The notes under the pieces are model-generated. The model searched no databases, was not told the DNA's origin, and was given only the letters and a program-made list of their open reading frames with translations. DNA of 64,000 bases from Tubulanus polymorphus. Lineage: Eukaryota > Animalia > Nemertea. The DNA is taken from contig NC_134030.1 of NCBI RefSeq assembly GCF_964204645.1, positions 6,428,778 through 6,492,777 on the forward strand. Direction: 5' to 3'. A program made the translations under genes and the position numbers. Below, piece after piece: positions 3,501 to 41,852 of this stretch (position 1 is its first letter; the number at the start of each line of letters is the position of its first letter).

Positions 3501-6500
3501 AGTCTATTTGTAATTAGCTAAATCCTATATGGTACAGAATTAACCTCGTTACTCAAGGGCAACAACAATCTCACTGAATGGCATCCATTAATTAGTACTG
3601 ACTAACGAAATCAATAATACGTCCAAATTGAAGATTAGCTTGGACCTGCAACAACGGACTAGGTTCATCGTTAAAAGGAAATAAAATAGAAGGATTGGAT
3701 CAATTTTATTCAGTTCCCAGTTGCTCTTAAGTAAGTTAACGAATTCAGCAATTTGATTTGAACTTATTGTCAAACCCATCGATTACAATGTAATATCCAG
3801 TAACATTACAGGACCTGATGACGTCGTTGCTGCGCGTTTAAGCCTCGGGTCTCGGAACTGCGATAACAGATCGCATGAATATTGACGAACAGTTTGTTCA
3901 TTCCGTATACTGAAAAATCGAGTGCATTGTCTCGTTTACGTATTTCTATTTTCACCATCCTGAAAGTCTCGATATTTTATGCCCGGAAGCGATTATTTCC
4001 AACGTAGATCATGCGGGGAGAGCACCCGGAACGTACGTAATACGACCATACGTGGAATATAATACGCCACGGACGAGTCGCTAAACGACTATTTATGTCC
4101 GATGATAATCAACGTACAACGATGATAAAAATTGAATAGGCCGTCAATTACTTCTTAAATCATCCGTTAGACCATTACATAGTATAATTTCCCTGACGGT
4201 CTGTCATTATCCCCCATCTTGCTGGAAGCTTTTCTTGCGATGATTTATACCGTCTACGACCCTGAAAGTTATCGTCGTCACGGTATAATTAATTATTGAA
4301 CCGATGCAGGACTTTCCGTCGTCATTTCGGTCGTTGTTGTATTTACCGTTTAATTAAACATTTACCAAATCGAGCCATTCTTTGCTTCTCGGCGATGTCG
4401 ACGGTCACGCTAACTACCGCAGATAACGCGTCTACCACAACGTCCGGTGCTTCATAAATAGCGAGTTGCACAATCGCGATAGACGAACTAGACTGCTTTC
4501 CATTGCGCCTGGCTGAAAATTATGTATCCGACATATTTCATATCGGAAATCCCCCTTAATCTAAGGGCAGCGACTCGCCAGACCAAATAAAACCCAACTT
4601 AGGTACGGCACAAGAGTGAAGAAGAAAGACGTGTTGACCGATTCGTACTAGAACTAATGAATTGGCTGTTGGTTGGGAAGGCCATCGGTAGGATACTGGT
4701 ACATGCAGTTAACATCGTCTTCGAAGGATTACTCACGCGACATTTCCATCAATTAATAAAGCATAGTCACCTCTCCGTACGAGACACGCGATAACAGATA
4801 ACGTAATACCCTGTACCGAAAAAAAGGGACGGTGATTCGTTCTAACCTTTAGTCCAATCAGACTGGACTGTTAAAAGAACTTGATTGAGTATGGTCGTAA
4901 TGTCGACGAATACCATTTGTATTATAAATGAATAACTGTGGGCATGCATTTATATCATTTCCCTCGCTAATGATGTAATTTTTTTCTGTTATTGCAATAT
5001 TTATCTATTCCAATCCTCTGAGATACTGAGTGACAACTCGTCGCCACCATTTCATTTACAAATCCATATTTCTTTGTTTATGTGCGCAGTGGGTACAGTG
5101 ATGTGTGCTTCCCACACCTTCTCCGAGGAGACAACCGACATAAGACAACCATAAATCCGATACGCGATTTACGGTTTGCAACTTAGAATTATTGCCATTT
5201 GTAGTGAATGGTTGGCCTAACAGCAGTAATTGGTTGGCTGACTTTCCGTTACGAAGTTTATGTGATTGGCTGTAAAACATCGGCAAGTGCAAGTTTGCAG
5301 TTTGAACGTCGTCATAGAAAAGATGCGTGTTGAATGCCATGTCATTAGCAACATGGCGGCGCACAATAGTTTCAGCCAATAAAACTGCTGCCTTCGAAAA
5401 CTCTCATCCGCTTCAGTATTGTTCGATGCGACGACGAGATTGTTGCGAGTTTGTAGCAGGAAATCGTACTGAGTACACGCCCTTTACTGCGAGAATCCCA
5501 ATCTACAGTTATTGTTGCATCCGATTCCCTTTTATATACACGATGGCAAAATCGCATTAAAAAGGTCGTACGTACTGTCAACTGGAGGATGATATAGAAT
5601 CAACTCAGTAATAAGTCAACTACATACATCCATATCTGTAAAACGACAAAATGTACAGCTTCATCTGTGACCGAAATGTGTTCTTAAAAAGTCGCGAGGA
5701 CAGTGACACTGGAAAGCGAGGCGTGCAAATGCGTAGATCGCTTGATAAATCGTCACCAAAGCCAGCGAATGTGCGTCCATTTATCATTGCCTTTTTCCCT
5801 TTAGCAATCATCGGGGCAGTTGCGGAGGTGGTCTAATTCAATACCAATCTCAATGTGCAACGTGCTCATCTCGGTTAATATCCAACCAGACACTTCTACG
5901 ACGCCACGAAACAAATTACGAGCAGTCCTTTCACTGCGCGGACGGTAAGGTCTCTTGACAGCCGCGTTGAGAGCTAGACACGCAACAAACACGATGAGCT
6001 CGGCGGCCGAATGACTCGTGAAATTAAAAGCGAGAAAAACTAGCCGACAATCACACCAAAGCGTTGCCCAGTACATCGCTGACCACTCGATAAAAACTCA
6101 GATTTATTAGAGGCTGCACAAAAGTATATTTTTCTGCAAACCTCGTTCGGTGTTTTATTCTCACAGAGCAGGGGGTAGTATTAAAGTATATAATGTGATA
6201 TATGCTACAACCTCCGAGTGCAGTAACCTTGACCTGTTAACTCAGACTTATACTGTTGCAGATGTCGTTCGAGTAAATATAGATCTCCACGAATGTCACG
6301 AAGCGCAGCGCACAAGGCCGTTTCTTCTTTATACTCCATTAGATAACTTACGGGAAAAAACCTTCTGTCGGACACAACTTTCACAAATACGTTCAATAAA
6401 GTCGCTTCGTTTGGAGAACGATTCGAACTCACGAAATGCCGCCACTAATGGGTTACCATTGGAAGCAGGATGTTTTCCTGAAGGAAGCAATTTACTCATA

Positions 6501-9329: not shown

Positions 9330-9412
9330 ACCAGGATGGCCGAGTGGTTAAGGCGTTGGACTTAAGTTCCAATGGACGAATGTCCGCGTGGGTTCGAACC
9401 CCACTCCTGGTA
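9330..9412 (+). tRNA. tRNA-Leu, anticodon UAA
   Basis: 83-nt cloverleaf: acceptor stem ACCAGGA/TCCTGGT, A-box TGGCCGAGTGG, anticodon stem TTGGA/TCCAA with loop CT-TAA-GT, long variable arm GGAC-gaat-GTCC, T-loop GGTTCGAACC. Confidence 0.97.
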
Positions 9413-9427: not shown

Positions 9428-12400
9428 CGAGCAACATTGAAGGCAAGAAGTCAGTTCTAGCTCTATCGAGCTAGCGAACCTTATCCTGATAAGATGAAAA
9501 ATCGCCTCTGTAATGTAGTGTAAACGCTCTGGTAAACGAGACCGGTCAAGATTTACTGCCAGTGAGGATAGAACCAACGAAAATCAATCCTGCCTAATGT
9601 ACGGTGAGCCTCTAATGGAAAAAATGACACCGCAGCCGCGAATATATCCGGTATATTTATACGTCCTTTCGCCAGAAACAAAGCCAATAATGTTGAGGCA
9701 TGATTCCCGGGATTTCTGGTCACTGATACGTGATGAAATTTATGGTTCAACACGGTGCCAGCAAATCAACTGTAAACTCTCTAAAAGTTGACAGTCACTC
9801 GGGCTTTCGTTAGATAGTCGATTGCTGTACTCGACTTCTCCCCCTCCCCCTTACTTGATTTATCGTGTTCTGGTCGTGGTTTAAAACAAGGCACAGTAAA
9901 CAAGACGATTCGTCACCATCATAAATGTTTATGAATGCCACCGGGTTTCACAGCTTCAAGGGAACAACAGAAAGTCTGAAACACAAACATCGGACGTCAT
10001 ATCCGTCCAAATGATCCTTCGTTGTTAGAATTGAGAGGTACAAAGTAGATTTTTATGCGGAATTTACGACGAATTGTATCGGATTCTGTAATCTTGAGTC
10101 TCGATTCGGGGCTTTAATGGAAATAACACAGCCAACATCATCAACGACTAAGATTCGATCTTGTCTCCTCGTCATCTTCGCTTTATACGAGATTTATTTA
10201 CGTATTTAAAGTTTCGAAAATTGCCTTAGTCTAGTTCAATTCGCGGAAGCCACATCCGACGCTATAACGCGAGAAACGCGGTTTGCCTCGGGCTACGCAT
10301 GCGGCCTGGCAGGCAGGAAACTCGTTCGTCACTCTATCGATGATTGCAAGTCTCGAACCATCGATTGTCGTAATTCAAAAAAATGTTTCACTCACTTATG
10401 CCTGTTACGAAGACAAGTTTACATCGTTTAGTTCCCATCAGAACAGATGTGGCGACAATCAATCGAATTTGCTCTTCTGTTGAACACAGATAAGCGGCAA
10501 TATTTATTTAGATCGATAGCGAATAAATTGGCCAAGTTACTTTATGCCTCCAAACGGTGCGTTTCCTGGGTAGAAACGCTTAAATTCGTGCATATACTAC
10601 ATGAGGAAATAGCCACAAACTGAGAATGTTCCGCTAGGAAAGGTTTGATGTTCTTTCGTACAGTTTATAGGCGCGTTAATGACGCTGTTTGTCATTAGTT
10701 TTCCCAGTTAGGTTTAAGGAGCAATGTCCATCGATGCTCCGCGAGGAAATCGCCTCATCTCAACTGAACGATACCACCCTCGGGAGTATTATTCCATGAT
10801 AATCGATATAATGAAGGTCAATGACCAATAGGTTGTTGGTTTTCAGAGAATAGCATGAGTTTCAAACTAGAAGCCGCTTCACTATGGTTGTGGAACTGAC
10901 TCACTGCATGATGATGAAAACTAACGTGTATCATTTCTAATTCTCGCAAAAATTCTTATGTCATTTTTCTTGCTGTTGAATATTGCTGTAGTCACCAAAA
11001 TATAATCTATGATATATATTTCGCTGTATAGCTGAATTTTGATAGCTTTGACCTTTAATGTTCAAAACATCCCAGTGGGTCACAAATTAAATCCCCTATA
11101 CCTGTGGTAACTACAGGAAAAAATCGCATTGCAAAATTAACATTTATTGAAAAATCAATATTTTAGCTCCAGTCGTTGGTCCGGAAGGAGTACGCAGCAT
11201 CTCCTCAAGTAAGGAAACATGGCTTACTAAATACAGTGAACGTGACGATCTATGGTGCGCTGTCACAAGCCACTTCCGGTGTAAATGGATTGTATTCAAT
11301 AATGCGACAAAAAAACGTAAAGCGACTTGTTAGCTGACCTTGACATCAATATATTTCGTGTGCACATCACAATCGACCAAGAATAAGTTACCTTTCAATC
11401 GGATTTGGATCATGTCATCGCAAAAAAAGTATAAACTAAATTGTCGGAATTGTGCGGTTTTTTTAATGCTTCAATCAGAAACCTTTCAGAAATCCTGAAA
11501 TAGCGATGCTTTATATTTTATTGGTTTTTGAAATTCAATCTTTCCCTGCAGGTTGATAGAGTTAACTTCCATCCGAAATTCAGTTGTCTATTATACTCAT
11601 TATAGCCTAATTCATCTCAAGATGACAATTCGGCGCATTCGATATTTCGCGAAAACCATGAGTAACCATCCCGCGTGAAATGAAATGAAATGGCCTCCCT
11701 ACCTTCGTGCGACTAACGAGACGGTCGTAAATTGAATTGAATGTCGAAAGAAATCAATAACGTCGTCTGCAGTTGGCGAATAAACGACTTTCAACAAACG
11801 AAAGAAATCGAAAAGCTCTGAAAAACTAGTGTGGAGAGAGACACAGGGAGGTATTCTAATTAAACAAGTCCGATTTACTGCTTGCTATATCTGCCGATAA
11901 CCAGCGTGTCTCTATACTTGGAGAAATGCGGGTTACTTTCCTTCGATATTTATAAACCACGCATTTATCAACATTATTATCATACAATTAAATCAGAATC
12001 GGCTGGAATGGACGACTGGCATGCGATCTAAACATGTTTCTATGAGTGTAATGAACTAATCACGGTCGTAATTTGTTACCGACTAAGTTGAGTACGGGTA
12101 GTTTCTTCTCGCTGCTGGTTAGAGGGGAAGACGGCAATTCACAGTCTCATTTCATTTCGCCTTGCATAATATGCGATGTATTAAGTACTTACACAACGAG
12201 AGAGATATCGAAAATACAGACGATGTAAACTATGAAACAACCAGGCGACACGCTACAGCACCCGTGGAATAATACTTGAAGAGATGATGGGAGAAGTTTT
12301 CGAAATTCAGTTTAACGTTACCCCCTTTGATCACATACATTTTTTTCACGAAAAAACTCTTCCGCCGTTAGAGTGCATTTGTATATTTACGCTCCCTCGA

Positions 12401-12867
12401 TTCAAATCGTTTGTTTTCTTTCCAACACCTGTAGAGTTATTGTGTTACGGAATAGAAGAAAAACCAAAGTGAGTGAAATTTCCTGAGTATTATTACTCCC
12501 TGAGTGTTCGGCGTATCGAAGCGAGAGATAATTCAAGGCGGATATTAAGGCTGCCGTCTATTTAAAAGCATTTGAGACAAACTCCAGCTGTCAGAATGAG
12601 ATCGATCTGAGACAGTTACATCTCAAAGAACCCGACAAGCAACAGACGTTTTGATTGAAATACCACGCTCAATAAAAAATCAATGCCTAGTCATAATAAG
12701 TATGCTTGATTTACGTGACATACACACTTTGGTAAAAAAGTGAACTCTAAACTTATCGAAACCAATTGACACACAAACTATGCTACATATCATCTCAGTT
12801 TGATCCACTCTTTTTCTCGATGGGTTCATAAATCTACAGCAATCAACATTGATACAAATACAGAAAT

Positions 12868-13144
12868 AGGGGCGGATCATGACTTTGACAGGAGCACAAC
12901 GGAATAAAAAGGGCATATACTGAACATTTGTTTGGAAGTTTCATCGCATTTTCATACAATTTCCAGGTATCGAAGGCCATTTAAGAGAATATAAGCTGAA
13001 TCTTGTGTTGCAGGCTGCTGTCTTCTAGTTGCGAGTAGAAAAAGTGCCCTGAGAAATATTTCCATTGTACTTTCAAAAGGGCACAGTAAAATTGGGACAG
13101 GAGCTCGTGCTCCTTGTACAGCCGTCTGGATCCGCGATCCGCCC
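12868..13144. mobile_element. Degenerate non-autonomous DNA element with GGGCGGATC...GATCCGCCC termini
   Basis: Short terminal inverted repeats and internal AAAAGGGCA/TGCCC motifs; a similar terminus (CAGGGGTGGATCTAGG) starts at 63890. No target-site duplication seen. Confidence 0.45.
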
Positions 13145-15480: not shown

Positions 15481-15824
<344 letters not shown>

Positions 15825-27263: not shown

Positions 27264-27347
27264 CATCCTCCCTCGGTGGGGATTCGAACCTGATGGCATT
27301 CGAGCCTCGATAGTTTCCGTATAACGAATCTATGCCAAGGGAGGATG
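27264..27347 (-). other. tRNA-like/Pol III-promoter-like hairpin (degenerate tRNA or SINE head)
   Basis: Minus strand reads CATCCTCCCTTGG...CCGAGGGAGGATG (13-bp terminal stem with one G-U), an A-box-like TGGCATAGATTCG and a B-box GGTTCGAATCC. No canonical cloverleaf. Confidence 0.45.
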
Positions 27348-27777
27348 TTATTTTTCAAGCATATTCGAAAGTGGCTTACAACCGACGCTACAACCAATGA
27401 ATCTATTCACCGTGGAATGTCTAAGGTGTAAGATTTGAAATGTAGTAGAATATGGACTGCCTACAAGACAAGAAGCTTGCGGAATATTACAAATATTAGA
27501 TTGAAATTGATATTATTGCCATAAATTCTAACAAATAGTATACAGACATGCAGCTTGTTTCATTATGATATGAAACTTCAAAATCAGCATTTCAATTCGT
27601 GATGCTATAAGTGACACACTCTGTTCGCATGACATTGAATTAAGCAAATAAACATACATCATTTTAAACGATCTCAAATGAACACTCTGAAAGTCGTTGA
27701 AATTGTCGTCTATTGAAGTGACACAACATTAAGTGGCTAGTGATATGATAACTTAAAATATCTAGAATTGATATGCG

Positions 27778-29355
27778 TTAAATCTTTGGTAGCTGAAGAT
27801 GTTTTGATTGTTCTCTTGACGGTTGTCTGGATGGTCCACGTGATGGCTGCACTCTGGATGGCGCTCGAGACGAAATTTCCACTTCTTCGTCGTAATACTT
27901 CTTCTGAATGTCTTCCCACCATTTTTTCCGTTTGAACCAACCGAGGTTCTCTTTGCCGGCGTATTCTTTCTCTTTAAACACGTAACCGAAACTGGGCTTA
28001 TAACCGATGTTATCCAACGAGTGGATTTGTCCTTCGCTTTCCCAATGAAGTTTCTCGTCTAAGATTCTGACGTCACCGCCGTGAGGTCTGTACCCCACGT
28101 TGTCTAACGAGCGCACTTTAGCGTCGGCTTTCCAATGCAGAGATTCGTTATAAACTTTGACGTCACCACCGTGTGGTTTATAATTACGATTTTCCAGAGA
28201 GCCTACTCGCGATGAGGCATCCCACACCCGTTTTTCGTCCAATATCGCGACGTTACCCCCTTGGGGTACGTAACCGACATTAGCGAAAGAATCAACTTTC
28301 GATTTCGCTCGCCAATTTGGTTTATCATCGAATATTTGTACATTTCCGCCAGTGGGTTTATGATTTTTATTTTCTAAAGAGCCGACACGAGGAGAAGCCA
28401 GCCATTTTGGTTTGTCATCTAGAATGGCTATGTTTCCACCATGCGGTTTATAGTTGATGTTTTCTAAGGAATTAACTTTTGATTTCGGATCCCAGTGTAA
28501 TTTCTCGTCATAAATACTAACGTTACCGCCGGACGGAGTATACATATAGTTTTCTAAAGACCCCACTCTCGGAGTGGCCGTCCATTGCTGCCTTTCATCC
28601 AGGATTCTAACATTTCCACCCTGAGGTTTATGGTGTACGTTATCAAACGAACCGACCTTAGCATTTGCGTTCCATCTGACATCCTCGTCATAGATCTTAA
28701 CGTTTCCGCCTGCCGGTTTATGTCCAACCTTTTCTAAGGACCCGACTTTAGGTTTCGTATTCCATTCTAACTTTTCGTCATAGATTCGCACGTTACCACC
28801 GGTTGGTTTGTGGTTTGCGTTCGCGAGCGATTGAACTTTAGGTCTGGCGTTCCACCTTACATCTTCATCGTAGATTTTCACGTTACCGCCGGCCGGTTTA
28901 TATCTAACGTTATCCAAAGATCGGATTTTCGACGTTGTGTTCCATTGCGGTTTCTCGTCCAGAATATGGACGTTACCGCCACGCGGTGTATACTTAGAAT
29001 TTTCCAAAGAGCCTACTTTCGACTGCGCGTTCCAACGAAGCTTTTCGTCGTAAACGTCGACGTTACCGCCTCGTGGGGTATAGTTAGCATTTTCCAGTGA
29101 ACCGATCTTTGCGCCAGTGTTCCATTGTGGTTTTTCGTCCAGAATTCGTACATCACCTCCACCCGGCTTGTAATGGGCATTATCTAGCGAGCCTACTTTC
29201 GCCCGAGCTCGAAGTCGGTCGCTAAAAAGCGGCACGTAGGCTTGGCCTCCGCTGGGCTTGTGATAGAAATGTTCAGTACTGTCGTCATGTCGAATTTGTC
29301 TACGACTTGTGTTTGGTGATAAAAGTTGGGTGTTCTGGTTGTTCGTTTCAGCCAT
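27778..29355 (-). CDS. Tau/MAP2/MAP4-family microtubule-binding repeat protein, 525 aa, single coding exon, 14 repeats
   Basis: 14 tandem 30-aa units, consensus W-N-A-x-x-K-V-G-S-L-E/D-N-x-x-Y/H-K-P-x-G-G-N-V-x-I-x-D-E-K, matching the tau KxGSxxNxxHxPGGG repeat. Confidence 0.92.
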   Translation of the reverse strand: MAETNNQNTQLLSPNTSRRQIRHDDSTEHFYHKPSGGQAYVPLFSDRLRARAKVGSLDNAHYKPGGGDVRILDEKPQWNTGAKIGSLENANYTPRGGNVDVYDEKLRWNAQSKVGSLENSKYTPRGGNVHILDEKPQWNTTSKIRSLDNVRYKPAGGNVKIYDEDVRWNARPKVQSLANANHKPTGGNVRIYDEKLEWNTKPKVGSLEKVGHKPAGGNVKIYDEDVRWNANAKVGSFDNVHHKPQGGNVRILDERQQWTATPRVGSLENYMYTPSGGNVSIYDEKLHWDPKSKVNSLENINYKPHGGNIAILDDKPKWLASPRVGSLENKNHKPTGGNVQIFDDKPNWRAKSKVDSFANVGYVPQGGNVAILDEKRVWDASSRVGSLENRNYKPHGGDVKVYNESLHWKADAKVRSLDNVGYRPHGGDVRILDEKLHWESEGQIHSLDNIGYKPSFGYVFKEKEYAGKENLGWFKRKKWWEDIQKKYYDEEVEISSRAPSRVQPSRGPSRQPSREQSKHLQLPKI

Positions 29356-31175
29356 TTACACCGGGTATCTCAACAGATTTACGATAAGAAACAATTTTAT
29401 TTTACGGAAACGGTCAAAATGTCTTTGCAAGAAATCCAACGACCTTGAAGGTGGTAAGCGTTTTCGCGCATACGGTGGTTATTGAGATATGATAATTTTC
29501 GAATTTATATTCCAGTAGCTGTCACAAAGGATTTCCTTCAGCAACGAAATGATTTCTAACTAAAAAAGAAAATACAGTTCATTACATGAGCCAATATTTG
29601 AAGATTATCGACACATTAAGGTCGTTTTACTCTAGCAACGTTTTCGAGAATCGTGCCCCTTTTGAAGAGCGAATACAGTTCGGGAATTCAGTTTTTTAAA
29701 CTTATAATCTATCATCCACGTCAGAATGTGGCTATTCTACTAGAGCTTGGGAATTTGATGAAAGCAATATACATGTATTGAGCGGTTTACGACTATAGAG
29801 TCATATTCCACACCACACGCGTATCAACATACTCATAGATTGGTGTTTCATTTCATCAAATCAACTATAATGCATTTAGAGATACCATCTGATTAACAAC
29901 CTATATCAAAGACTACTACTGACCGCAACACTACATACCTTGTCAGGTATAATTTACTTACAAACCATCGTGCGAAGGATTATTCATTTCACGGATTATG
30001 AAATTATTTCATGAATAGTTGTCGTTAAGTAAACGAATCCACTTAATGACTAAATAGAAAATTCGGTGAACGCTAGCTTATATTGGTATTTCAGTAATCC
30101 AGTAGTAGTCCCCTGCGTAACGTAGAAAGCCTGCTGAATAAACGCCAACACGACTTTCATGACAACGAGCGCTAAGCATATTTAAACTGGTATGGCATTA
30201 GATTCGCTCTGTTATCAAAAGCTACCGGTAAATTACATACAATCCGTAGTTTGTTTATATCAGTGAAGTTCTTACACATATGAATGCGGTCACGGCAGAT
30301 CCTACGAGCGAACGATTTCAAAATCTCAGAATTTATTTCTTAATATGATTTCGTGTATACAAATTCATCAAATTGGAAGGCGGTACGATCAAGGGTAACT
30401 GGCTTCTTTTCAAAAGTCTCTTTGGTTTATTTGAGTTATAATCAAAATCATTAAAGTACCTATATCAAAAAGGCTGTTGAATCTTGAATAACAGCTTTAG
30501 ATTTCGGTTCAAATTCTAGATTAATTCCGATTAAAGAACAAAGTTTTGGTTGATTGAAGAGGGTTTTAATGGTTGTTAGCCCTTCTGGAATTCGTATAAT
30601 CTACTCAATTACAAATGAAAGGCCAACAACAAAAGCCCCGGTTCATTGTGGTTCACAAGTTTTAGCGCCCTGTGATTTCTCCAGATACAATACTGTAATT
30701 CCAGTTTTTTTCACTTTACAATATGAATGCACCTGCTTTAGCAGACACATACGCAAATATAACCAATTCAATAACAAACGATATTACGCCGTATTTCTCT
30801 TTCGAATTTCCTATTCGTATCGATTATTCATACGAATATTAAAATCATTGAAATATTCTACTGAATTTTACAATCTAAATACATAACACTTTCTGAAATT
30901 GTAATAGCTCAAAGGACTCGATTTATTTCTAACACGGTAACTGAATTGATTCGGCACGTATCTATGGAACACATCCAGTCTATAGTTAGTCTAAACGGTA
31001 CTTAATCATATGTATATGTATTTATTTCAAAGTCCGTCAAAGATATCTCGGCAAGCAATTTCACACTAGTACCAACCTAAACACTAAGACATAATCTATT
31101 ATCCATTTTATTTTATTCTAACGCATTTATTTAGAAACGTACCTGTTAATAATTGGAAGCAAAGGTGCGGAGAAT

Positions 31176-34100
31176 TTATTCATGCTGTTGTATTTTGTCC
31201 GCGAGGTCGTCGTCAGGGTGCTCAGTAACGCTCTGTTCCCTGCCACTGTCTTCGAAGTTAACCTATACAAAACAAGCGTTAGCTTCCGTCATTAACGGCA
31301 AATATACACACAACAACCCCTATTCACTCATTATTATACAAACACGTCACTAATAATGCCTTTTCATGTCAGAAAGTTCATATTTTTCCGCTTAAGTGGA
31401 GTTTAACATTTCAAGTACATCGAAATAACGCACGTTCTACTTTCAGAAAGACAATATGTTGTAATTATCGGCATGGCAAAAGATCTGGTTTAGAAGATGA
31501 ATTGTCTAGTCATCATGTCAAGAGGTTGTTTCAAATAAGTAGTTTTAATCTTATACTGGTGTTATGAAACGAATGGTTTCATATTATCTTGAATCTCGAA
31601 AATATTGAAATACATTTATTTCCCTGTAAACAAACATGGAATTAGCCAACAACGCACAGCTAAATAACCAGAAACTCCGCACTAAAACATAACAACATGA
31701 CACCACAGGGAGCAAACGAAGCAATAATAGACTTACCAGGAGGAAAATATCAAGTCCTAAAGACTGATTCGATAGAACCAGCAGTGTGTGTAAGAAGATT
31801 AATGTTTTCCGAAAGAATGAAATTGTTGAAATTCTAACGCTGAAACGTGTCTGAATGTCGATTGGAAACGTAGCTCGCTCCGTATTTACTGCATTGATTA
31901 AACAGGGGATAGTAATGGAATGAGCGCCCCGTGGGTTCATATTCATGTATTGATTAGAAAACACAGCACGACTAGGATACATATACACATACGTTAATTA
32001 CATTAGTTACTGATTTTCCTGTAATGAAATTAATTAATTTCTTCCTCGTGTTTATCTAATAGTTTCATCTCGTATAGTTTTAGAAACGTGCCCTTACGAT
32101 CCGACTGATAGTGTTGTAATTGGAAATTCATCATATGGTTGTTCGAATTTGATTTGTCATTTTGAGTATGGTGATCATAACTAACGCACGTAATTCTGAT
32201 GTAAAGGATAATAGCAATTTGAACGAATTCAAGGCTTGTAAACACTGCGTTTTACCTGTTCGTCAGCTGCATCTGCGGTTGTCTCAGTATCTGTAGTTAT
32301 GATTTCGTTTCGTTCCTGGTCTACGTTATCATTAATGTTACCGGTATTTGATGATATCGCATCTTTTGTCGATGTATCGACCGGTGTTACTGCTGCAGAA
32401 CCAGTCTCGCTATCCTTCTTATCAATCGATTGTTCAGTCTTTGTATCATCAATAGCTTGTCCGATATCCTCGGTTACTGCGACATCATTGCTATCTTTCG
32501 TAGCATTAGATCCTTTTCTGCCGTGTGGCCTATTTCCTTTTCCGTTTTTTGGTGCAGAACGGTTCTGATCTTGTTTTGAAGTTGTAGATTTTTGGTCGTC
32601 AGATGGCGTTTCGATAGATCCACCGTTTTCTGCTAATTGACGTTTCTTTTGAGTGTGTTTCATTAACGCCGCTACCTTAGATACGGCATTCCACTTTAAT
32701 CTGTGATGTACTACAAACTGAAAACAAACGACAAACTCTTATGTAAAATCTTTTTAAAAAATGTAGAAATAATAGCTATTGTGCCCCCACCAAGTGGTGT
32801 AATGAAAAGAAGATTCTTTCAAGGAAATCTGAAAATCTTATGCCATATATATTGCACATGATTTGTGTTGGAGACTATATACCTTCTTTTCTTCACGTTT
32901 AGGTTTATATCCAACATTCTGCAGGGAATTCACTCTTGCATCGGATTTCCATTCTACCTTGTGGTTCTCGACGTACTTGTAAAGAGAATACACATGGAAG
33001 GGGGATAAAGCAACACAACGATAAACTGGTATTCAAGCCAACAACATAAAAACAAGATGTGTCAAACTATATCTATAAGCGAAAGAAATTATCGTCTTTG
33101 CGGGAGCAGCAGCTTGCCATCATTCAGATGAAAGTACAAAACTAGGAACGAGTTCCTCAGAGGATGTATAATGGTACCCGCTACCATAATATATATTCAT
33201 CGTACGACCTTTGAGCAACTGGACCTAGGTTGAGGTTGTTAATTCTAAAAGCAAAGCGTAATTGAGCCATTTTAGAAAATATGGTAACCTTTTTATCCTT
33301 CCTTATGGGAACAAAGTCAGCCTTTGCCCACGGTGTACTACGATTATCCAAACTGATCGAAGAACGCTTTAGCACTGGTTTTGGAGCTGCTGTAATAATG
33401 AAAAACAGTTTTACTACTAAACATGTGGAGGGAACACGTGGGAGTGGTACGGTATATACGATAGTAAGTTAAAACAGATCAAGTCAGCATAAAAACTACG
33501 ACGCAGTATATGTATGTATATGAAAATAGAATCGATGTGTCTAATCTGTTTTGCTAATGATATATGATCTGAATAATATATGACCGGTCACAGGTGCATC
33601 AGACTACGTATCATTGCGTGACATTTTGATGACGTTTTTTTTCATTTTATTTCATCTATTTGACAAACTTATATGATCATTTATAATACAAAAACAACAG
33701 GTTATAACGTTATAACATAAGTTTGTCTGGGGATTTTGCTCCGAAAAGCAACACGTGTTCATAGGAAGTGACCCCAGGAAGGGATAAAGTTTATACGTAA
33801 TGAATTCAAATAGATTTATATGCAGCAATACGACAATAAGTCATTCGAGGATTTCATTACTTGTTTTTGTCGAAATTAACGTGATTCATCAGAACGGATT
33901 GTGTGATCCACTCCCTGATTGATTTATTCGACGGAAATTCTAATATTTACATAGTACACATGTACATGTTTGATTGGGTCTATTGATTTGAAAAATAGAA
34001 TAATCATACATTACAAACCGAATACACAGAACAGATGTTAGCATTATTGTTATATTATAGCAATAGTTCGTACAATGAGTAGCGAACGAACTGTTTGTGG

Positions 34101-37100
34101 TTAAATGGATGCTGTGCAAGTTAGGAATTTTGTATGAAACACCATAAGCAAATTCATAGATTGATTGCTAGCTCCGTGACGATGATTTCACACTACATTT
34201 GCTTCTGCAATCGCTTCAGGGTGACTTTAAAACATCCCAAGCTTGACATGAAATATTTGGCGCACAATTCGGACTTTGGATCATATGCGGTTTATTGCAC
34301 TGTAAAGTTCAATTTGAAATCCGATGTATTGCATAATCCAATTGAGACAAAATAATCGATTTACATTGAGTCAGTGAGATCCACATATTCATGATTTGAA
34401 TATTTAGTAAAACAGACCATAAAAACACATTGTATTGCCCCAGCTGGGAAATTAACACATAATATACAATTTATAGTCTGCGAAATATACTACATGGAGT
34501 ATTAGTACATTATATATTTTACTAGCCCTGTTGCATCGTATTATCCTTATCATCAATGAAAGGTCTGATAAGATAACCGCGTTAACAATTATCCAAAACT
34601 AGTATGCGAAAACCTGGTGCTTTCAGCCCATTCGAGCTGACAGTTGGTAACATCGCAGTGCACATTTGTCTTTCATTGTCAATTAAACTGCACCAATGAA
34701 AAGTTATTTCTTGAATTTCTTGAATATTTTCAGTTGCCCGAATCTCCTGTAAAATCCTCCACCAATAACTGTTCAAATATTTATCACTTACCGGATCTTT
34801 TGTTGACAGGTTGTAATCGCTTTGTTGGTGCTGGCGCACTACTTGGCTTATCCTTATGTCTAGGTACTGATCTACTATCATTCGCTTTATCAGCTGATGC
34901 CGTGTTCGTCTTTTGAATGGGAGTTTTGTCTGCTCTTTGAGCGTCGTGGCTCTGAGCTCTGCGAATTGGTGCTGGCTTCGTAGCTCTTACTACATCCATG
35001 GATGATTTTCGGGCCTGAACTTTAGTGGTATCCGCTCTTTTATTTGAGGATGGTTTAAGGGTTTTAGATGGTACCGGAGGCGGTATTACACCTGTAGACG
35101 AATCCTGTCTCCGCCTGATTACCTTAGGAGGGGTATCTTCCTTGGGAGAAGAATCGTGGATTTTACTTGTATCCTTATCATTCTTCGTTGCAGTTTTTGA
35201 TTTTGCAACAACTTTAGCTTTAGTGTCTTTGTTGATTTTATCCTTCGTAGTTTTATTCGTGGTATTGACTTGTTTTGGAGCAACCTGTTTGCCTGCTGGT
35301 CGATTTCTTATGTTACTTGATTTACCACGGTTTTGCGGTGCATCTTTACCATTGGTTTTAGTACCAATGTGCTCAGTTTCTTCTTTTGAGTCTGGAGTAT
35401 CTACCAACTGTTTTAGAAAGTCCAAATTACTCTCTTGTGCATTCTCAATCGTTCCAACGGTAGTTCCATCCCTCCCACAGATTATATCCGATTTTCTACG
35501 CCTTTTCCGTAATGGAATATCGCAAACAATACTGCAACGCTTACTTAGTGTCAGCATTTCTTGTTTTTGATCGACGTACAGCCTTGAATTGCAGTTTTTC
35601 TCTTGTGATATAGGCCTGTTTTCAGCATCCAAACTGTCTTGGTCAAACCTTTCCACAGGGCCTTCCTCGATGGTAGAATTCTCTTTTTCAACAACATTTG
35701 AATTCAAATTATCTTGATTAACATTTTCAGTTGTAGAATTCAAACTATCGTGATCAAACTGCGAGCGTTCCTCTTCATTTTCTGATGGCAATATGGCATT
35801 ACTCTTTTTATCAAAACTGTCCCCATCAAATTCAGTATTCGTTTTCTCAGCAAAGTGGTCTTCAGCATCACTTGATCTAATGTCCTTTTCAATATCGTTA
35901 TTATCATCATCCATTGAAAATTCTTGACGTATATGGTCAAGCGTCATTTCGCAATTAAGATAGAAATCGTAAGTTGCTGGGTTGGCCTCTTCCACAACAG
36001 CGTCCACTTTCAAATCTCTGTTTTCCTCTTTTGTAGCATCTTTGTTATTTGACGGTTTGGGTTTACTTTGTTTGGATATTTTACTGATAGTTTCTGTCTT
36101 TACCTTAGATTTTTCTGTTGCTTTTTTAGTTTTTGCACCGGTGGATTTTGACATATTCGATTCCGATGTCGGCTTTAACGAGGAAGAGCTTTTGGAATTC
36201 GTTTCGGGCTTGCTTTTTTCGACAGACTGGCTTCCCGTTCTTGTACTTGCTAATTTAGTACTAACTGGTGTTGATAGTTTAATTGGATCGGATACTTGTT
36301 TCTTAAGATTCCGGCCCTTTGTTGTAGCATTACCTTTAGGTGCTTCTTCGGCAGTGACTGACTTCTGGTTAGTCTTTCTGGAAATCGGTTCTCCTTTCTT
36401 CGCGAGACTTTCTTTCCTTTCAGGCTTAGCTGGTGGTGTTGTAGTCACCGCACTTGTTACACCAGCTTTACCCTTTGACCTATCAATAGTCGGTTTTGTA
36501 GCACCATTCATTCTTGTCTGTCGTGACGTCTTAGTATCATCTAAAATGCTACCAACACTTGCATTTCTATCCGGTCTTTTCGGTTTAGTATAAACTGGTC
36601 GCTCCTCGGCCGAACGTTGCTTTGATAGGCTCGTTACTTTTTTCGAAATCTCACCTGGTGCAGATTTCTTCACGTGATTTTCCAGTTCTGTGTGCTTTTT
36701 ATCATCTCCCAGATGATCTTTCTTCGGTTTAGACTTTGGTCGGAGATTATCAACGGATTCCAACTTGTCTTTGATGACCTCATCAGGGGCTTTACTCGCG
36801 GAAGACTTTTCATCGTTGGCAGATGTTTCACTTTCATTTATGTTTTCCGAATTCTGTTCCATATGGTTCCCTTCAGACGGACTCATCTTTTTAGCAATAT
36901 GCTCCTCGTATTCATTCAGGTAACTCATAGTGATATCTGTTTGACAGCTAAATTCAACTTTTGAATCACTAGTGTCAGAAGATTTTAAAGTCCCATTAGC
37001 CTGCTTAGAAGGTTGATTCGTTTCTTCGACAATCTTTGCAGCGGGTTTGAGACCATTTTCCTGAATTTGGTTCGTAAGAACAACCTCCCTCAACAGTGAC

Positions 37101-37756
37101 CACTTACGAGCTTTACGAGGGGGAGCAACTGGGGCATTATCTGTCGCTGTTTTTTCATCTGTAGCCTTGACTTCTAGTTCATTTTCTGTATCTTTGTTAT
37201 TCTTCTCATCGTCAACAACGTCTTGACTTTTATTGATATCATCTTCTTTTTTAGTTTCATCTGTCGAAACCTTAAATGCTGCTTTGAATGCAGCCCAGCT
37301 AGATCGACGCCCCATTGACACTGCTGCCGGAGCCTTCTCACCCTCCTCAACTACGTTATCCCCATCAGCATTGATAGCAAGCCCCTTTTTCACTACGTCA
37401 ACATCGGCCGATGGTTTGTCTACTTTACTGTCGTCATCTTTGTCACTTTTCTTTTTCCCATCAGCTGAAATCGCTTTCACTAATTTCGGACTTGCTTTCT
37501 TTTTATTAACTGCGGACGATTTGTTGTCCTTTTTAGACACATTCACAGGTTTTGCAGCCTTTGAATTCGACTTATTCACCGAATCACCTTTTCCTTCCAA
37601 TACCCTTTGAGTTTCAAGCTCATCGATAAACCTTATTACGTCATCCCAATCTATACCTTCAATTTCATCGGTCTGTGTTTCCGCAAAAGGGCGGTAGACT
37701 TTACCTTTAACAGATTTGCTCAAAAGACGGGCAAAAAATCCCAACTTTGCTGCCAT
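31176..37756 (-). CDS. Large MAP2/MAP4-like disordered protein (~1235 aa); predicted exons 37756-34792, 33389-33289, 32975-32883, 32717-32256, 31262-31176
   Basis: A 990-codon K/S/T/D/E-rich ORF ends at a G|GTAAGT donor. Downstream GT-AG exons join in frame. The 93-nt exon encodes a tau-type repeat (YVENHKVEWKSDARVNSLQNVGYKPKREEKK) and the next exon begins with a partial one (FVVHHRLKWNAVSKV). The start codon and last exon are less certain. Confidence 0.75.
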
Positions 37757-39148: not shown

Positions 39149-40657
39149 ATGATATTTGCAATTTCAATCACTCTCTTGGTCGCCAGTTTAGAAGTTGTAT
39201 CAGCGGGTAGAGTGTTACTTCTACCTTCAATATGGCCAAGTCACTTAATGGAAATGAAGCCTATTGCTGCTGCATTAACTCGACGAGGTCACCAGCCATT
39301 TATGATAATGCCAAGTACAGCCGTCCTGATTCCAGACTCGCTTAAGAAATCTGGCGTGAAATTTGTAAAGTATCATTCGACGAACGTAGACCCTTTCAAC
39401 GACGAATACATGAAAAATAAGTCAACACAGGCTTATCTTGACTTTAAAATGGGAGAAAATGAGTTGTTACTTGATGTTGGTGGTAGGCAGTGTAACGACG
39501 TGGTTGGCAATATCGATTTATTATCAGATTTGTCGAAGTTAAAATTCGATCTGGTGCTCATCGATCCGTTCTTTCCATCGTTATGTTTGTATAAAGTAGC
39601 CGAGCAAATAGGTAAGCCGGTAGCTGCATTGACGTCACTTCCGTCTTGGCCGTGGTCTCCGGCATTCGCTAGATTGCCGTCTATATCACAGTCGTTTATA
39701 TTCGGTGGAACAAACGACTGGGGTATTGTGAATCGTTTTATCAATGTTGCTGTCTACGTCGGCATTAGCTTCCAACCTTATCTTCACATTCGGAATCTAG
39801 AACTCCCACATCTGGCGACGAAACTTACAGACGTTTGGTTTATAGAAGCCGAGGAATTGTTAGATGCTGCCCGAGTTAGCGCCCCGAATGTTCGCTGGGT
39901 CGGTGGACTTACCGCACAGCCACCAGCGCCGTTACCAGAAAAATTGAATAAATTCGTTGAATCTGCTAGTGCTGGATTCTTACTGGTTGCATTTGGCTCG
40001 AAATTGTCGAATCTTGGAAAATCGATCAACGAAAAAATGGTGAAGGTTTTCGGTAAACTCAACCGAAAAGTGATCTGGAAAGTAAGATCTGGTTACGAAG
40101 GTATCGACAATTTGCCGGACAACGTGATGCCGTTATCGTGGGTTCCTCAGAACGACCTTTTAGGTCACGTAAATTGCCGGGCCGTGCTCCTACATTGCGG
40201 TAATAACGGCATGTACGAAGCCTTGTATCATGGTGTACCGATGATTGGTAATCCGGCTATCGGTGACCAACCATTCAATTGTAAGAGACTGAAAAACAAA
40301 GGATTCGGATTGACGATCGACGTAAGGACTGATGACGTCGACAAAATTTATAATACGATAAAAGAAGTTATCGATAATCCAATCTATCATAGAAATATAG
40401 AAAAAGCATCAGCAATTCGTAAATCGCGAATGGTTTCTCCTGTCGATGAAATAGTTCATACTATGGAACTAATGATGACGTACGGTACAAAACATTTGAA
40501 ATTTCCACCCAGTGACCTAAACATCTTTCAGGTCATTCTTCTCGATGTTTTGTTTGTAGTTGCTTTTATCGTCATCTGCTTGATCTTCATCGTAAAATTT
40601 TTTTGTAAAAGATTGTGTTGCAAGAACAGTAAAATGATGAAGTTGAAGAAGAAATGA
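39149..40657 (+). CDS. UDP-glucuronosyl/glycosyltransferase (GT1), 502 aa, intronless CDS
   Basis: Signal peptide, N-terminal SH catalytic His, UGT signature WVPQNDLLGH...HCGNNGMYEALYHGVPMIGNPAIGDQ, C-terminal TM helix and lysine-rich ER-retention tail. Confidence 0.96.
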   Translation: MIFAISITLLVASLEVVSAGRVLLLPSIWPSHLMEMKPIAAALTRRGHQPFMIMPSTAVLIPDSLKKSGVKFVKYHSTNVDPFNDEYMKNKSTQAYLDFKMGENELLLDVGGRQCNDVVGNIDLLSDLSKLKFDLVLIDPFFPSLCLYKVAEQIGKPVAALTSLPSWPWSPAFARLPSISQSFIFGGTNDWGIVNRFINVAVYVGISFQPYLHIRNLELPHLATKLTDVWFIEAEELLDAARVSAPNVRWVGGLTAQPPAPLPEKLNKFVESASAGFLLVAFGSKLSNLGKSINEKMVKVFGKLNRKVIWKVRSGYEGIDNLPDNVMPLSWVPQNDLLGHVNCRAVLLHCGNNGMYEALYHGVPMIGNPAIGDQPFNCKRLKNKGFGLTIDVRTDDVDKIYNTIKEVIDNPIYHRNIEKASAIRKSRMVSPVDEIVHTMELMMTYGTKHLKFPPSDLNIFQVILLDVLFVVAFIVICLIFIVKFFCKRLCCKNSKMMKLKKK

Positions 40658-40913: not shown

Positions 40914-41852
40914 ATGAATGATTCGGCACAGTATCGACTTCCTTTTTACACAACCATAGTCTTAGACACGCCTAAAGCTATATCCGAGACTATGAGATAT
41001 TTCCAATTGATTGCGTTGCCTATAATAGCGGTAGCCGGAATTTTCGGAAATATTTGCAGTTTCCTAGTGATGGTTAGTCGTAGATTCCGTGTGTTTTCTT
41101 ATTCTCAATACCTCGCTGCACTCGCCGTGTTTGACATGCTTACCTTGTTAGCTTACACGATGCCTTTTATCAACTACGTTACCTATCCCAACATGGTTAT
41201 CACGTATTCTTCTGATTTGGCATGCGCCATTCATGAGTACATCGCGATGGTTAACGATGCTGTCAGCTCTTGGATGGTGATCATCATCACCGCTGAACGT
41301 TTTGCTATAGTCGTTTGGCCGTTCGCTGCCCGGACTATTGCGACGCCATCTTTTTCGCGAAAGGTCATCGTATTTTTCACCGTTGTTTTCTATTGTTATT
41401 ACGCGTATTTATTCAAAGTTATGAAATACAACGTTCAAATGGATACGTGCGTTATGACACGATACGGAGGAGATCTACATTTTCAGTCCGCTACGATCTT
41501 GGTTGTATATCTACCTACCGTATCTATTTTAGCGTTCAACTTTTTTCTAGCTTTGATTTTACGCCGAAGCAACAAATTCGGTGACAGCGGAAGCAAAGCA
41601 GCCTCAACTCGCAAAGCGACGGTTATGGTAATGACAGTTTCAATATTGTTCGTAATTTTCACGTATCCCACGGCATCTTTTCTGATGATTTCGACGTACG
41701 TCCCGATTGATCAAGATATCATAATCATCTTGTCGGCGGTGACCGGTGCCGCGTATGCGATGAACAGTGCCATTAACTTCTACGTGTACTTACTAGCCGG
41801 GGACGAGGTGCGTAATTTCGTCAAAGAACGAATCATGAAATGGTGCAAATGA
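40914..41852 (+). CDS. Class A (rhodopsin-like) GPCR copy 1, peptide-receptor-like (FMRFamide-R/GPR139-type) orphan
   Basis: 312 aa, 7 hydrophobic segments, GN in TM1, LAVFD in TM2, ERF (DRY variant), TM3/ECL2 cysteines, NSAINFYVY in TM7. Confidence 0.93.
   Translation: MNDSAQYRLPFYTTIVLDTPKAISETMRYFQLIALPIIAVAGIFGNICSFLVMVSRRFRVFSYSQYLAALAVFDMLTLLAYTMPFINYVTYPNMVITYSSDLACAIHEYIAMVNDAVSSWMVIIITAERFAIVVWPFAARTIATPSFSRKVIVFFTVVFYCYYAYLFKVMKYNVQMDTCVMTRYGGDLHFQSATILVVYLPTVSILAFNFFLALILRRSNKFGDSGSKAASTRKATVMVMTVSILFVIFTYPTASFLMISTYVPIDQDIIIILSAVTGAAYAMNSAINFYVYLLAGDEVRNFVKERIMKWCK

Follow-up and report, generated by a model that had tools for sequence, protein, structure and literature searches.

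Introduction

The microtubule-associated proteins (MAPs) tau, MAP2 and MAP4 carry 3–5 copies of a tubulin-binding repeat (Pfam family PF00418), which is encoded at one repeat per exon and is combined with a projection domain, a proline-rich region and the R' flank. The flanking Pro-rich and R' regions give tau its high affinity for microtubules. Along the protofilament each repeat of tau adopts an extended form and links three tubulin monomers, with Ser262 of the KIGS motif bonded to Glu434 of alpha-tubulin (PMC6692637). Artificial R1x4 and R2x4 constructs, which consist of four tandem tau repeats only (PDB 6cvj/6cvn), bind the microtubule longitudinally, and an "unexpectedly high" repeat number was described in molluscs in 2022, including a MAP with 10 repeats in the oyster Crassostrea gigas (PMC8985376).

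The present analysis concerns a window of 64,000 nucleotides (nt) from the genome of Tubulanus polymorphus (contig NC_134030.1, positions 6,428,778 to 6,492,777), where an open reading frame (ORF) on the minus strand at 27778–29355, designated here as gene B, encodes a protein built almost entirely of 14 tubulin-binding repeats. T. polymorphus is a palaeonemertean ribbon worm. A larger MAP-like gene on the same strand just upstream of gene B is designated as gene A. According to the data given below gene B is probably a genuine, transcribed and constrained, divergent paralogue of tau/MAP2/MAP4, which is reduced to the microtubule-binding region with a short tail, would act as a multivalent binder of the microtubule lattice, shares its terminal exon with the gene A transcription unit and represents an old type of locus.

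The Repeat Array of Gene B

The coding sequence (CDS) of gene B and its parts are as follows.

27778..29355, minus strand: CDS of the repeat-only tau-family protein, 525 amino acids (aa) and a TAA stop, from the ORF listing and PF00418
29206..29355, minus strand: first 50 residues of the protein, which include the degenerate half repeat HKPSGG (residues 32–37) and no projection domain
27946..29205, minus strand: array of 14 tandem tubulin-binding repeats of 30 aa each (residues 51–470), tiled in exact 30-residue register by a hidden Markov model (HMM) built from its own repeats
27910..27987, minus strand: conserved tail motif G-Y-[VI]-F-K-E-K ... K-R-K-x-W-W-E, common to gene B and two ORFs of Lineus longissimus

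Membership in the tau/MAP family, which was proposed by the first-pass annotation made from the sequence together with a profile check, is well confirmed by Pfam, where PF00418 matches gene B in 13 stretches with 369.2 bits (cut-off 27 bits, E 4.5e-113), and in a six-frame scan of the genome 12 of the repeats individually exceed the cut-off. The HMM built from the gene B repeats tiles 27946–29205 with 14 units and without gaps, so that the earlier description of 14 uninterrupted 30-aa repeats taking up nearly the whole protein holds and goes well beyond what chance would produce. The ATG is located at 29355 with an in-frame TAA immediately 5' of it, and only 50 residues precede the first repeat, in agreement with the proposed absence of projection and proline-rich domains in the ORF. 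Fifteen P-x-G-G-like motifs follow each other from residue 33 to residue 453 at a spacing of exactly 30 residues with zero insertions or deletions (indels), and the last unit merges in its second half into the tail motif. The protein contains no Cys.

Within the unit Ser6, Pro14 and Gly17 are present in all 14 repeats, while Asn9, Gly16, Val19 and Trp28 are each found in 13 of them, the last one bearing out the Trp noticed earlier at nearly every repeat junction. The motifs [KR]-[VI]-x-S-[LF] and P-x-G-G also occur in 13/14 repeats, [KR]-x-G-S is retained in eight, and the strict PGGG is confined to repeat 1. When searched by phmmer against human tau chains, among them the models 6cvn and 6cvj of tau on microtubules, gene B aligns with E about 1e-21 in repeat-to-repeat register with R1–R4, and its Trp falls on the Phe of KLDF at the R3–R4 junction of tau.

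The repeats are strongly diverged at the DNA level, and recent slippage as their source was correctly dismissed in the first-pass annotation. Repeats 1–13 share a mean DNA identity of 59% (range 50–74%); the proportion of synonymous differences (pS) is 0.80 and thus saturated, that of nonsynonymous differences (pN) is 0.30, and pN/pS is 0.37, which marks the duplications as ancient and under constraint. A similarity peak at lag 2 points to growth of the array by 60-aa double units. Because the array is too diverged at the DNA level, the program TRF reported only 2.3 copies in the region, and the repeat HMM was used instead. A retrogene origin of the single-exon array has no support either way because the synonymous sites are saturated. 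A match to PF22532 (WIV_dom) of 22.8 bits lies under the cut-off of that family and was dismissed as noise, and a 58-codon open stretch in another frame of the region is unremarkable.

The alignment of Tubulanus and Lineus sequences contains 25 invariant tail columns, and among 364 fetched proteins the motif was detected in the Lineus protein P0005 only. Single-sequence AlphaFold2 predicts a helix at residues 468–489 with a predicted local distance difference test (pLDDT) score of about 82–85, which weakly suggests that the gene B tail may form a basic-aromatic helix.

Transcription, Gene Structure and Constraint

The contigs of four public T. polymorphus sequencing runs were placed on 27401–33400 of the window. 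Run X2 gave unspliced DNA in a single 11.5-kb piece, while run X1 gave spliced forms with five joints, all of the GT..AG type on the minus strand, and because these joints lie on the strand of the gene X1 is considered to behave as cDNA. The transcribed parts around gene B are the following.

27338..27777, minus strand: 3' untranslated region, part of the terminal exon; the end is approximate; X1 record 1 extends 63 nt beyond 27401
29356..29559, minus strand: 5' leader of 204 nt within the terminal exon, with the acceptor at 29559, two stops in the ORF frame and one short upstream ORF
29560..31142, minus strand: intron of 1,583 nt in the gene B 5' leader, with donor GTACGT, polypyrimidine tract and AG acceptor, skipped by X1 record 1
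31143..31262, minus strand: 120-nt exon common to the upstream-gene transcripts and the focal exon (joints 31143->29559 and 32256->31262)
31263..31753, minus strand: unspliced RNA-like contig running into the 120-nt exon, which may be an internal first exon of a transcript specific to B or else a partly retained intron
32256..37756, minus strand: upstream MAP-like gene A, with exons 37756–34792, 33389–33289, 32975–32883 and 32717–32256

X1 record 1 runs from ~27338 to 29559, skips 1,583 nt and resumes at 31143–31264. X1 record 3 joins 31262 to 32256, 32717 to 32883, and 32975 to 33289, and its loose end past 33390 maps to 34793, which is the end of a 990-codon ORF. The third form, X1 record 2, covers 31235–31753 unspliced at depth 7.6 and enters the 120-nt exon from the preceding intron, while X1 coverage is nil in 31801–32200; a transcript that serves the repeat ORF alone may thus have its internal start site here. 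Contig depths of 16.4 and 7.6, compared with 28.1, are in accord with two sources feeding the terminal exon, contig depth being a poor measure. Thus, the gene was described earlier as intronless, and this can be kept for the CDS, which is uninterrupted in one exon, but not for the gene as a whole, which has a 1,583-nt leader intron, is spliced to gene A exons and does not stand alone.

The reading frame across the joints was computed locally. The stop of gene A is situated at 31176–31178, inside the 120-nt exon, and the ATG of gene B follows 237 nt of mRNA later in the same frame with five in-frame stops between them; with the observed joints there are therefore two distinct ORFs and no fusion protein.

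The assembly differs from the other runs by eight single bases inside the gene B ORF, and all eight differences are synonymous. Together with the frame of 525 codons kept intact at a genome GC content of 38% and the pN/pS of 0.37 between repeats, this shows purifying selection on the gene B protein.

As a separate observation, X2 differs from the assembly at eight positions in the 1,578-nt ORF (spanning 27790–28873, with five of them within 28045–28258) versus six positions and three indels in the remaining 4,422 nt of 27401–33400. The synonymous diversity in the array looks several-fold above that of the flanking introns, which may be due to gene conversion among the repeats or to a haplotype of old age.

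Upstream Gene A

The gene A ORF comprises 1,235 codons in five exons, including the 120-nt exon, and encodes a long disordered K/S/T/E-rich region followed by 2–3 degenerate Trp-type repeats and an acidic tail. The repeats are placed one per exon of 93–101 nt and have lost PGGG, which is replaced by P-W-A-K or K-P-K-R-E-E. The exons were searched one by one. The large exon, of 988 aa, gave no Pfam match and no homologue (not even itself) by word search, and its ESM Atlas look-alikes were sub-threshold, at 0.80 or less. Over 30 aa, exon 3 shares 53% identity with one of the repeat exons of the canonical MAP gene in this genome, and according to this identity gene A is regarded as a decayed family member, its MAP kinship being based on the small repeat exons only.

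Relatives in the Same Genome and in Lineus

In a six-frame scan of the whole 268-Mb assembly PF00418 detected two loci only, the gene B locus and a canonical tau/MAP gene at C6:5,720,959-5,726,575, which is located on the same contig at ~730 kb from gene B; gene B itself is single-copy in this genome. The canonical gene has ~8 repeats of 40–65 bits each, one per small exon, and mixes Trp-type (K-L-x-W) with Phe-type (K-L-D-F) units, PKGG variants being also present. Five of its exons are Trp-type, so the Trp is not peculiar to gene B.

The clearest orthologue of gene B is the 321-aa protein P0005 of Lineus longissimus, which is annotated as "microtubule-associated protein 2-like" and modelled separately by NCBI. 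P0005 and the ORF in tandem with it resemble gene B in being repeat-only with Trp-type repeats, in the ATG that follows an in-frame stop (five codons upstream in Lineus), in the WWE tail and in the same-strand position inside or beside a larger MAP gene, which in Lineus encodes 1,266 aa, spans the ORFs and has canonical repeat exons just upstream of them (L013:507-605, 5002-5049). The tail and the same-strand location within or downstream of a larger MAP gene, by which a nemertean class of repeat-only MAPs was defined from the Lineus ORFs, are both found in gene B. The differences are that Lineus has ~8 and ~5 repeats in two tandem ORFs with an extra 3' intron after WWE, while the single ORF of Tubulanus has 14 units of uniform length, and that the Lineus host gene retains good canonical repeats, while those of gene A are degenerate. 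Since in both Lineus and Tubulanus a large MAP gene is accompanied by a repeat-only ORF, this arrangement predates the palaeonemertean/pilidiophoran split. A literature search found no paper on nemertean tau.

At the Lineus locus itself (OU343004.1, L013) the tandem repeat-only ORFs occupy 10001–10996 and 12203–12868, both of them WWE-tailed, and their 30-aa Trp-type units alternate with units of ~35 aa of the form Y-H-D-Y...R-A-Q-P-K-V-G-S.

Repeat Number in Other Animals

A word search with gene B returned 981 relatives, and an exhaustive search of representative proteins returned 834 at E <= 0.001, the best with 305 bits; nothing closely similar to gene B was found in either protein library. 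The repeats of 244 relatives were counted with one and the same HMM and vary in number from 3 to 13, the highest counts being as follows.

13 repeats: Lytechinus pictus MAP2-like XP_063952560.1, 1,847 aa
11 repeats: Lingula anatina tau isoforms
11 repeats: Clavelina protein
11 repeats: ORFs P0001 and P0003
10 repeats: Nucella protein
10 repeats: Mercenaria tau-like

The commonest spacings in this set are 30 and 31 residues (441 and 403 cases). With up to 13 repeats in the relatives and the 10-repeat oyster MAP in the literature (PMC8985376), the statement of the first-pass annotation that relatives have 3–5 repeats of 31–32 aa proved to be too narrow, and the figure of 3–5 is a bias of vertebrates and model organisms. 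The 14 repeats of gene B form the top of a continuous distribution and not a separate class. In the repeat-number survey, which was proposed at the same time, relatives with ten or more repeats come from sea urchin, brachiopod, tunicate and molluscs.

The many-repeat MAPs of Crassostrea, Lytechinus, Lingula, Clavelina, Nucella and Mercenaria have PF00418 in common with gene B, 10–13 repeats and a spacing of 30–32 residues, and Trp-type repeats also occur in those of spiralians. They are, however, proteins of 690–1,850 aa with large N-terminal regions, while gene B is repeat-only, single-exon and one repeat above their maximum. Judged from the sequences compared, this repeat-only, single-exon build is the unusual feature of gene B, although it recurs in other ORFs: uninterrupted multi-repeat ORFs are also present on the genomic contigs of P0002, P0003 and P0006, and the contig of P0001 was uninformative on gene structure.

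Two further observations concern the family in general. The isoform lengths of Lingula (1,060, 1,090, 1,120, 1,150 ...) and Haliotis (1,469, 1,499 ... 1,619) proteins step by exact multiples of 30 residues, which suggests alternatively spliced single-repeat cassette exons in these MAPs. Multi-repeat PF00418 proteins are also annotated in early-diverging fungi (Mucoromycota, Glomeromycota and a chytrid with ankyrin repeats), and hence the repeat family is not restricted to animals.

Proposed Mechanism and Alternative Explanations

Gene B shares with vertebrate tau/MAP2/MAP4, C. elegans PTL-1 and Drosophila tau the repeat family, the K-x-G-S-type anchor Ser, the P-x-G-G turn and the hydrophobic end of the repeat. 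It departs from the canonical architecture of tau/MAP2/MAP4 in having 14 repeats in a single exon, in place of 3–5 at one per exon, and in the lack of projection domain, Pro-rich region, R' flank and Cys, in its lower positive charge and in PGGG being kept in one repeat. In the restriction to tandem repeats it resembles the engineered constructs, which are artificial, have four repeats and bind along protofilaments, while gene B encodes a natural protein with 14 repeats and putative microtubule binding. By homology with tau each gene B repeat would be extended along the crest of the protofilament, where the invariant Ser of K-V-G-S-L-[ED]-N would contact the interface with tubulin, and the gap to the following site would be spanned by the P-x-G-G and hydrophobic/Trp segments. 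In this way a single molecule could cover as many as ~14 consecutive tubulin dimers (14 x 8 nm) as a multivalent staple of presumably low affinity per site. The 14-dimer clamp or ruler proposed in the first-pass annotation is plausible by homology. The translation probably proceeds from the own ATG of gene B, either on transcripts that start in the last intron of gene A or on longer shared transcripts.

Several points weigh against this reading. The RNA nature of X1 is deduced from splicing, no run being recorded as RNA, and the proposed internal start site is derived from a single unspliced contig. On the transcripts spliced from gene A, gene B is a downstream cistron, and ordinary scanning would not translate such an ORF. 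The exact look-up of the 525-aa protein was negative, and no array-bearing T. polymorphus protein was present in either protein library. The binding to microtubules is ascribed to gene B by homology only, while the net charge of its repeats is ~+0.8 per 30 aa versus +2.3 to +2.9 for the tau of fish and of Daphnia, and with this low charge and the absent Pro-rich and R' flanks the single-site affinity may be low.

The low charge, the missing high-affinity flanks of tau and the lineage-specific conserved tail with its predicted helix would suit a protein whose main partner is not the microtubule lattice but actin, soluble tubulin or membranes contacted through the tail helix, or which acts as a condensate scaffold. 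This explanation is considered doubtful, as the tubulin-anchoring residues are precisely the most conserved columns of the array (Ser in 14/14 repeats and [KR]-[VI]-x-S-[LF], Asn and P-x-G-G in 13/14 each) and a unit length without any variation agrees with a lattice partner of regular period. The binding to the lattice is favoured for the same reason, since the columns that are conserved best comprise the tau anchor and P-x-G-G, and old units free of indels fit a partner of fixed period.

A different question is whether the 14-repeat exon belongs to gene A as an alternative terminal coding exon, which a splice outside the observed set (through an internal acceptor, a microexon or a change of frame) would fuse to the long N-terminal region, so that a conventional tau-like protein with a projection domain would result. 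Both lie on the same strand, and splicing joins their exons in RNA-like contigs; phase 0 is found at the end of every upstream exon, and the frame of gene B is also that in which exon 6 begins; moreover, gene A has degenerate repeats of its own and would otherwise be left without a good binding region. Nevertheless such a fusion is unlikely in view of the five in-frame stops that separate the two ORFs at the observed joints and the TAA directly before the ATG. From 29559 to the 3' end the focal exon forms a single contig without branches, in which no internal acceptor was seen (contigs drop rare forms), and no 20-nt microexon was found in the contigs. The orthologous ORF of Lineus is likewise preceded, at a distance of five codons, by a stop in frame, and in the NCBI annotation it forms a protein of its own with 321 aa.

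Still less can be said for a relic without function, such as MAP repeats that arrived as a processed copy in the 3' untranslated region of gene A and are not translated. It would explain why all repeats are collected in one exon, in contrast to one per exon in the canonical gene, and why gene B lies 3' of the stop of another ORF on the same transcript, but the intact frame of 525 codons, the 8/8 synonymous polymorphisms and the pN/pS of 0.37 are hardly compatible with it, as are the tail-bearing Lineus orthologues across the deepest split of Nemertea and the similar uninterrupted multi-repeat ORFs on other genomic contigs. Such a relic is therefore regarded as very improbable.

The reading of gene B as a transcribed and constrained lattice-binding paralogue is accordingly retained as the probable one. 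It can be extended to a "split tau" conserved across Nemertea, where one unit would give rise to a projection-type MAP with decayed repeats and to a separate repeat-only polypeptide, made from a downstream cistron or an internal promoter and acting as a fixed staple or ruler of ~115 nm; this extension is speculative and should be taken as a tentative proposal with a small chance of being correct.

Other Features of the Window

Downstream of the transcript 3' end a tRNA-like T-loop string was noticed, where neither ARAGORN nor Rfam indicates a gene. Elsewhere in the window the following features were recorded.

9330..9412, plus strand: tRNA gene (Rfam RF00005, 62.7 bits)
15484..15824: (GAGG)n microsatellite of ~85 copies, which explains the GC-skew spike at 14–16 kb
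39149..40657, plus strand: UDP-glucuronosyltransferase in a single ORF (PF00201), 100% identical to an NCBI T. polymorphus protein, the NCBI model covering 64% of the ORF
40914..41852, plus strand: rhodopsin-type G protein-coupled receptor (PF00001)

Significance

From the sequences compared, gene B can best be placed in the PF00418 family as a variant with a new architecture, whose Lineus orthologue is annotated but undescribed. Nothing in the knowledge of the family is overturned by it, as many-repeat tau relatives are already deposited in databases and treated in one mollusc paper. Tau biology rests almost wholly on vertebrate proteins with 3–5 repeats, and a natural protein consisting solely of 14 equal repeats would be a ready reagent for asking in what way microtubule affinity, spacing and stabilisation depend on repeat number and valency, and whether a MAP can do without its projection domain. 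That a projection-type paralogue belongs to the same transcription unit in two distant nemerteans also raises the question of how two halves of a MAP come to be expressed separately.

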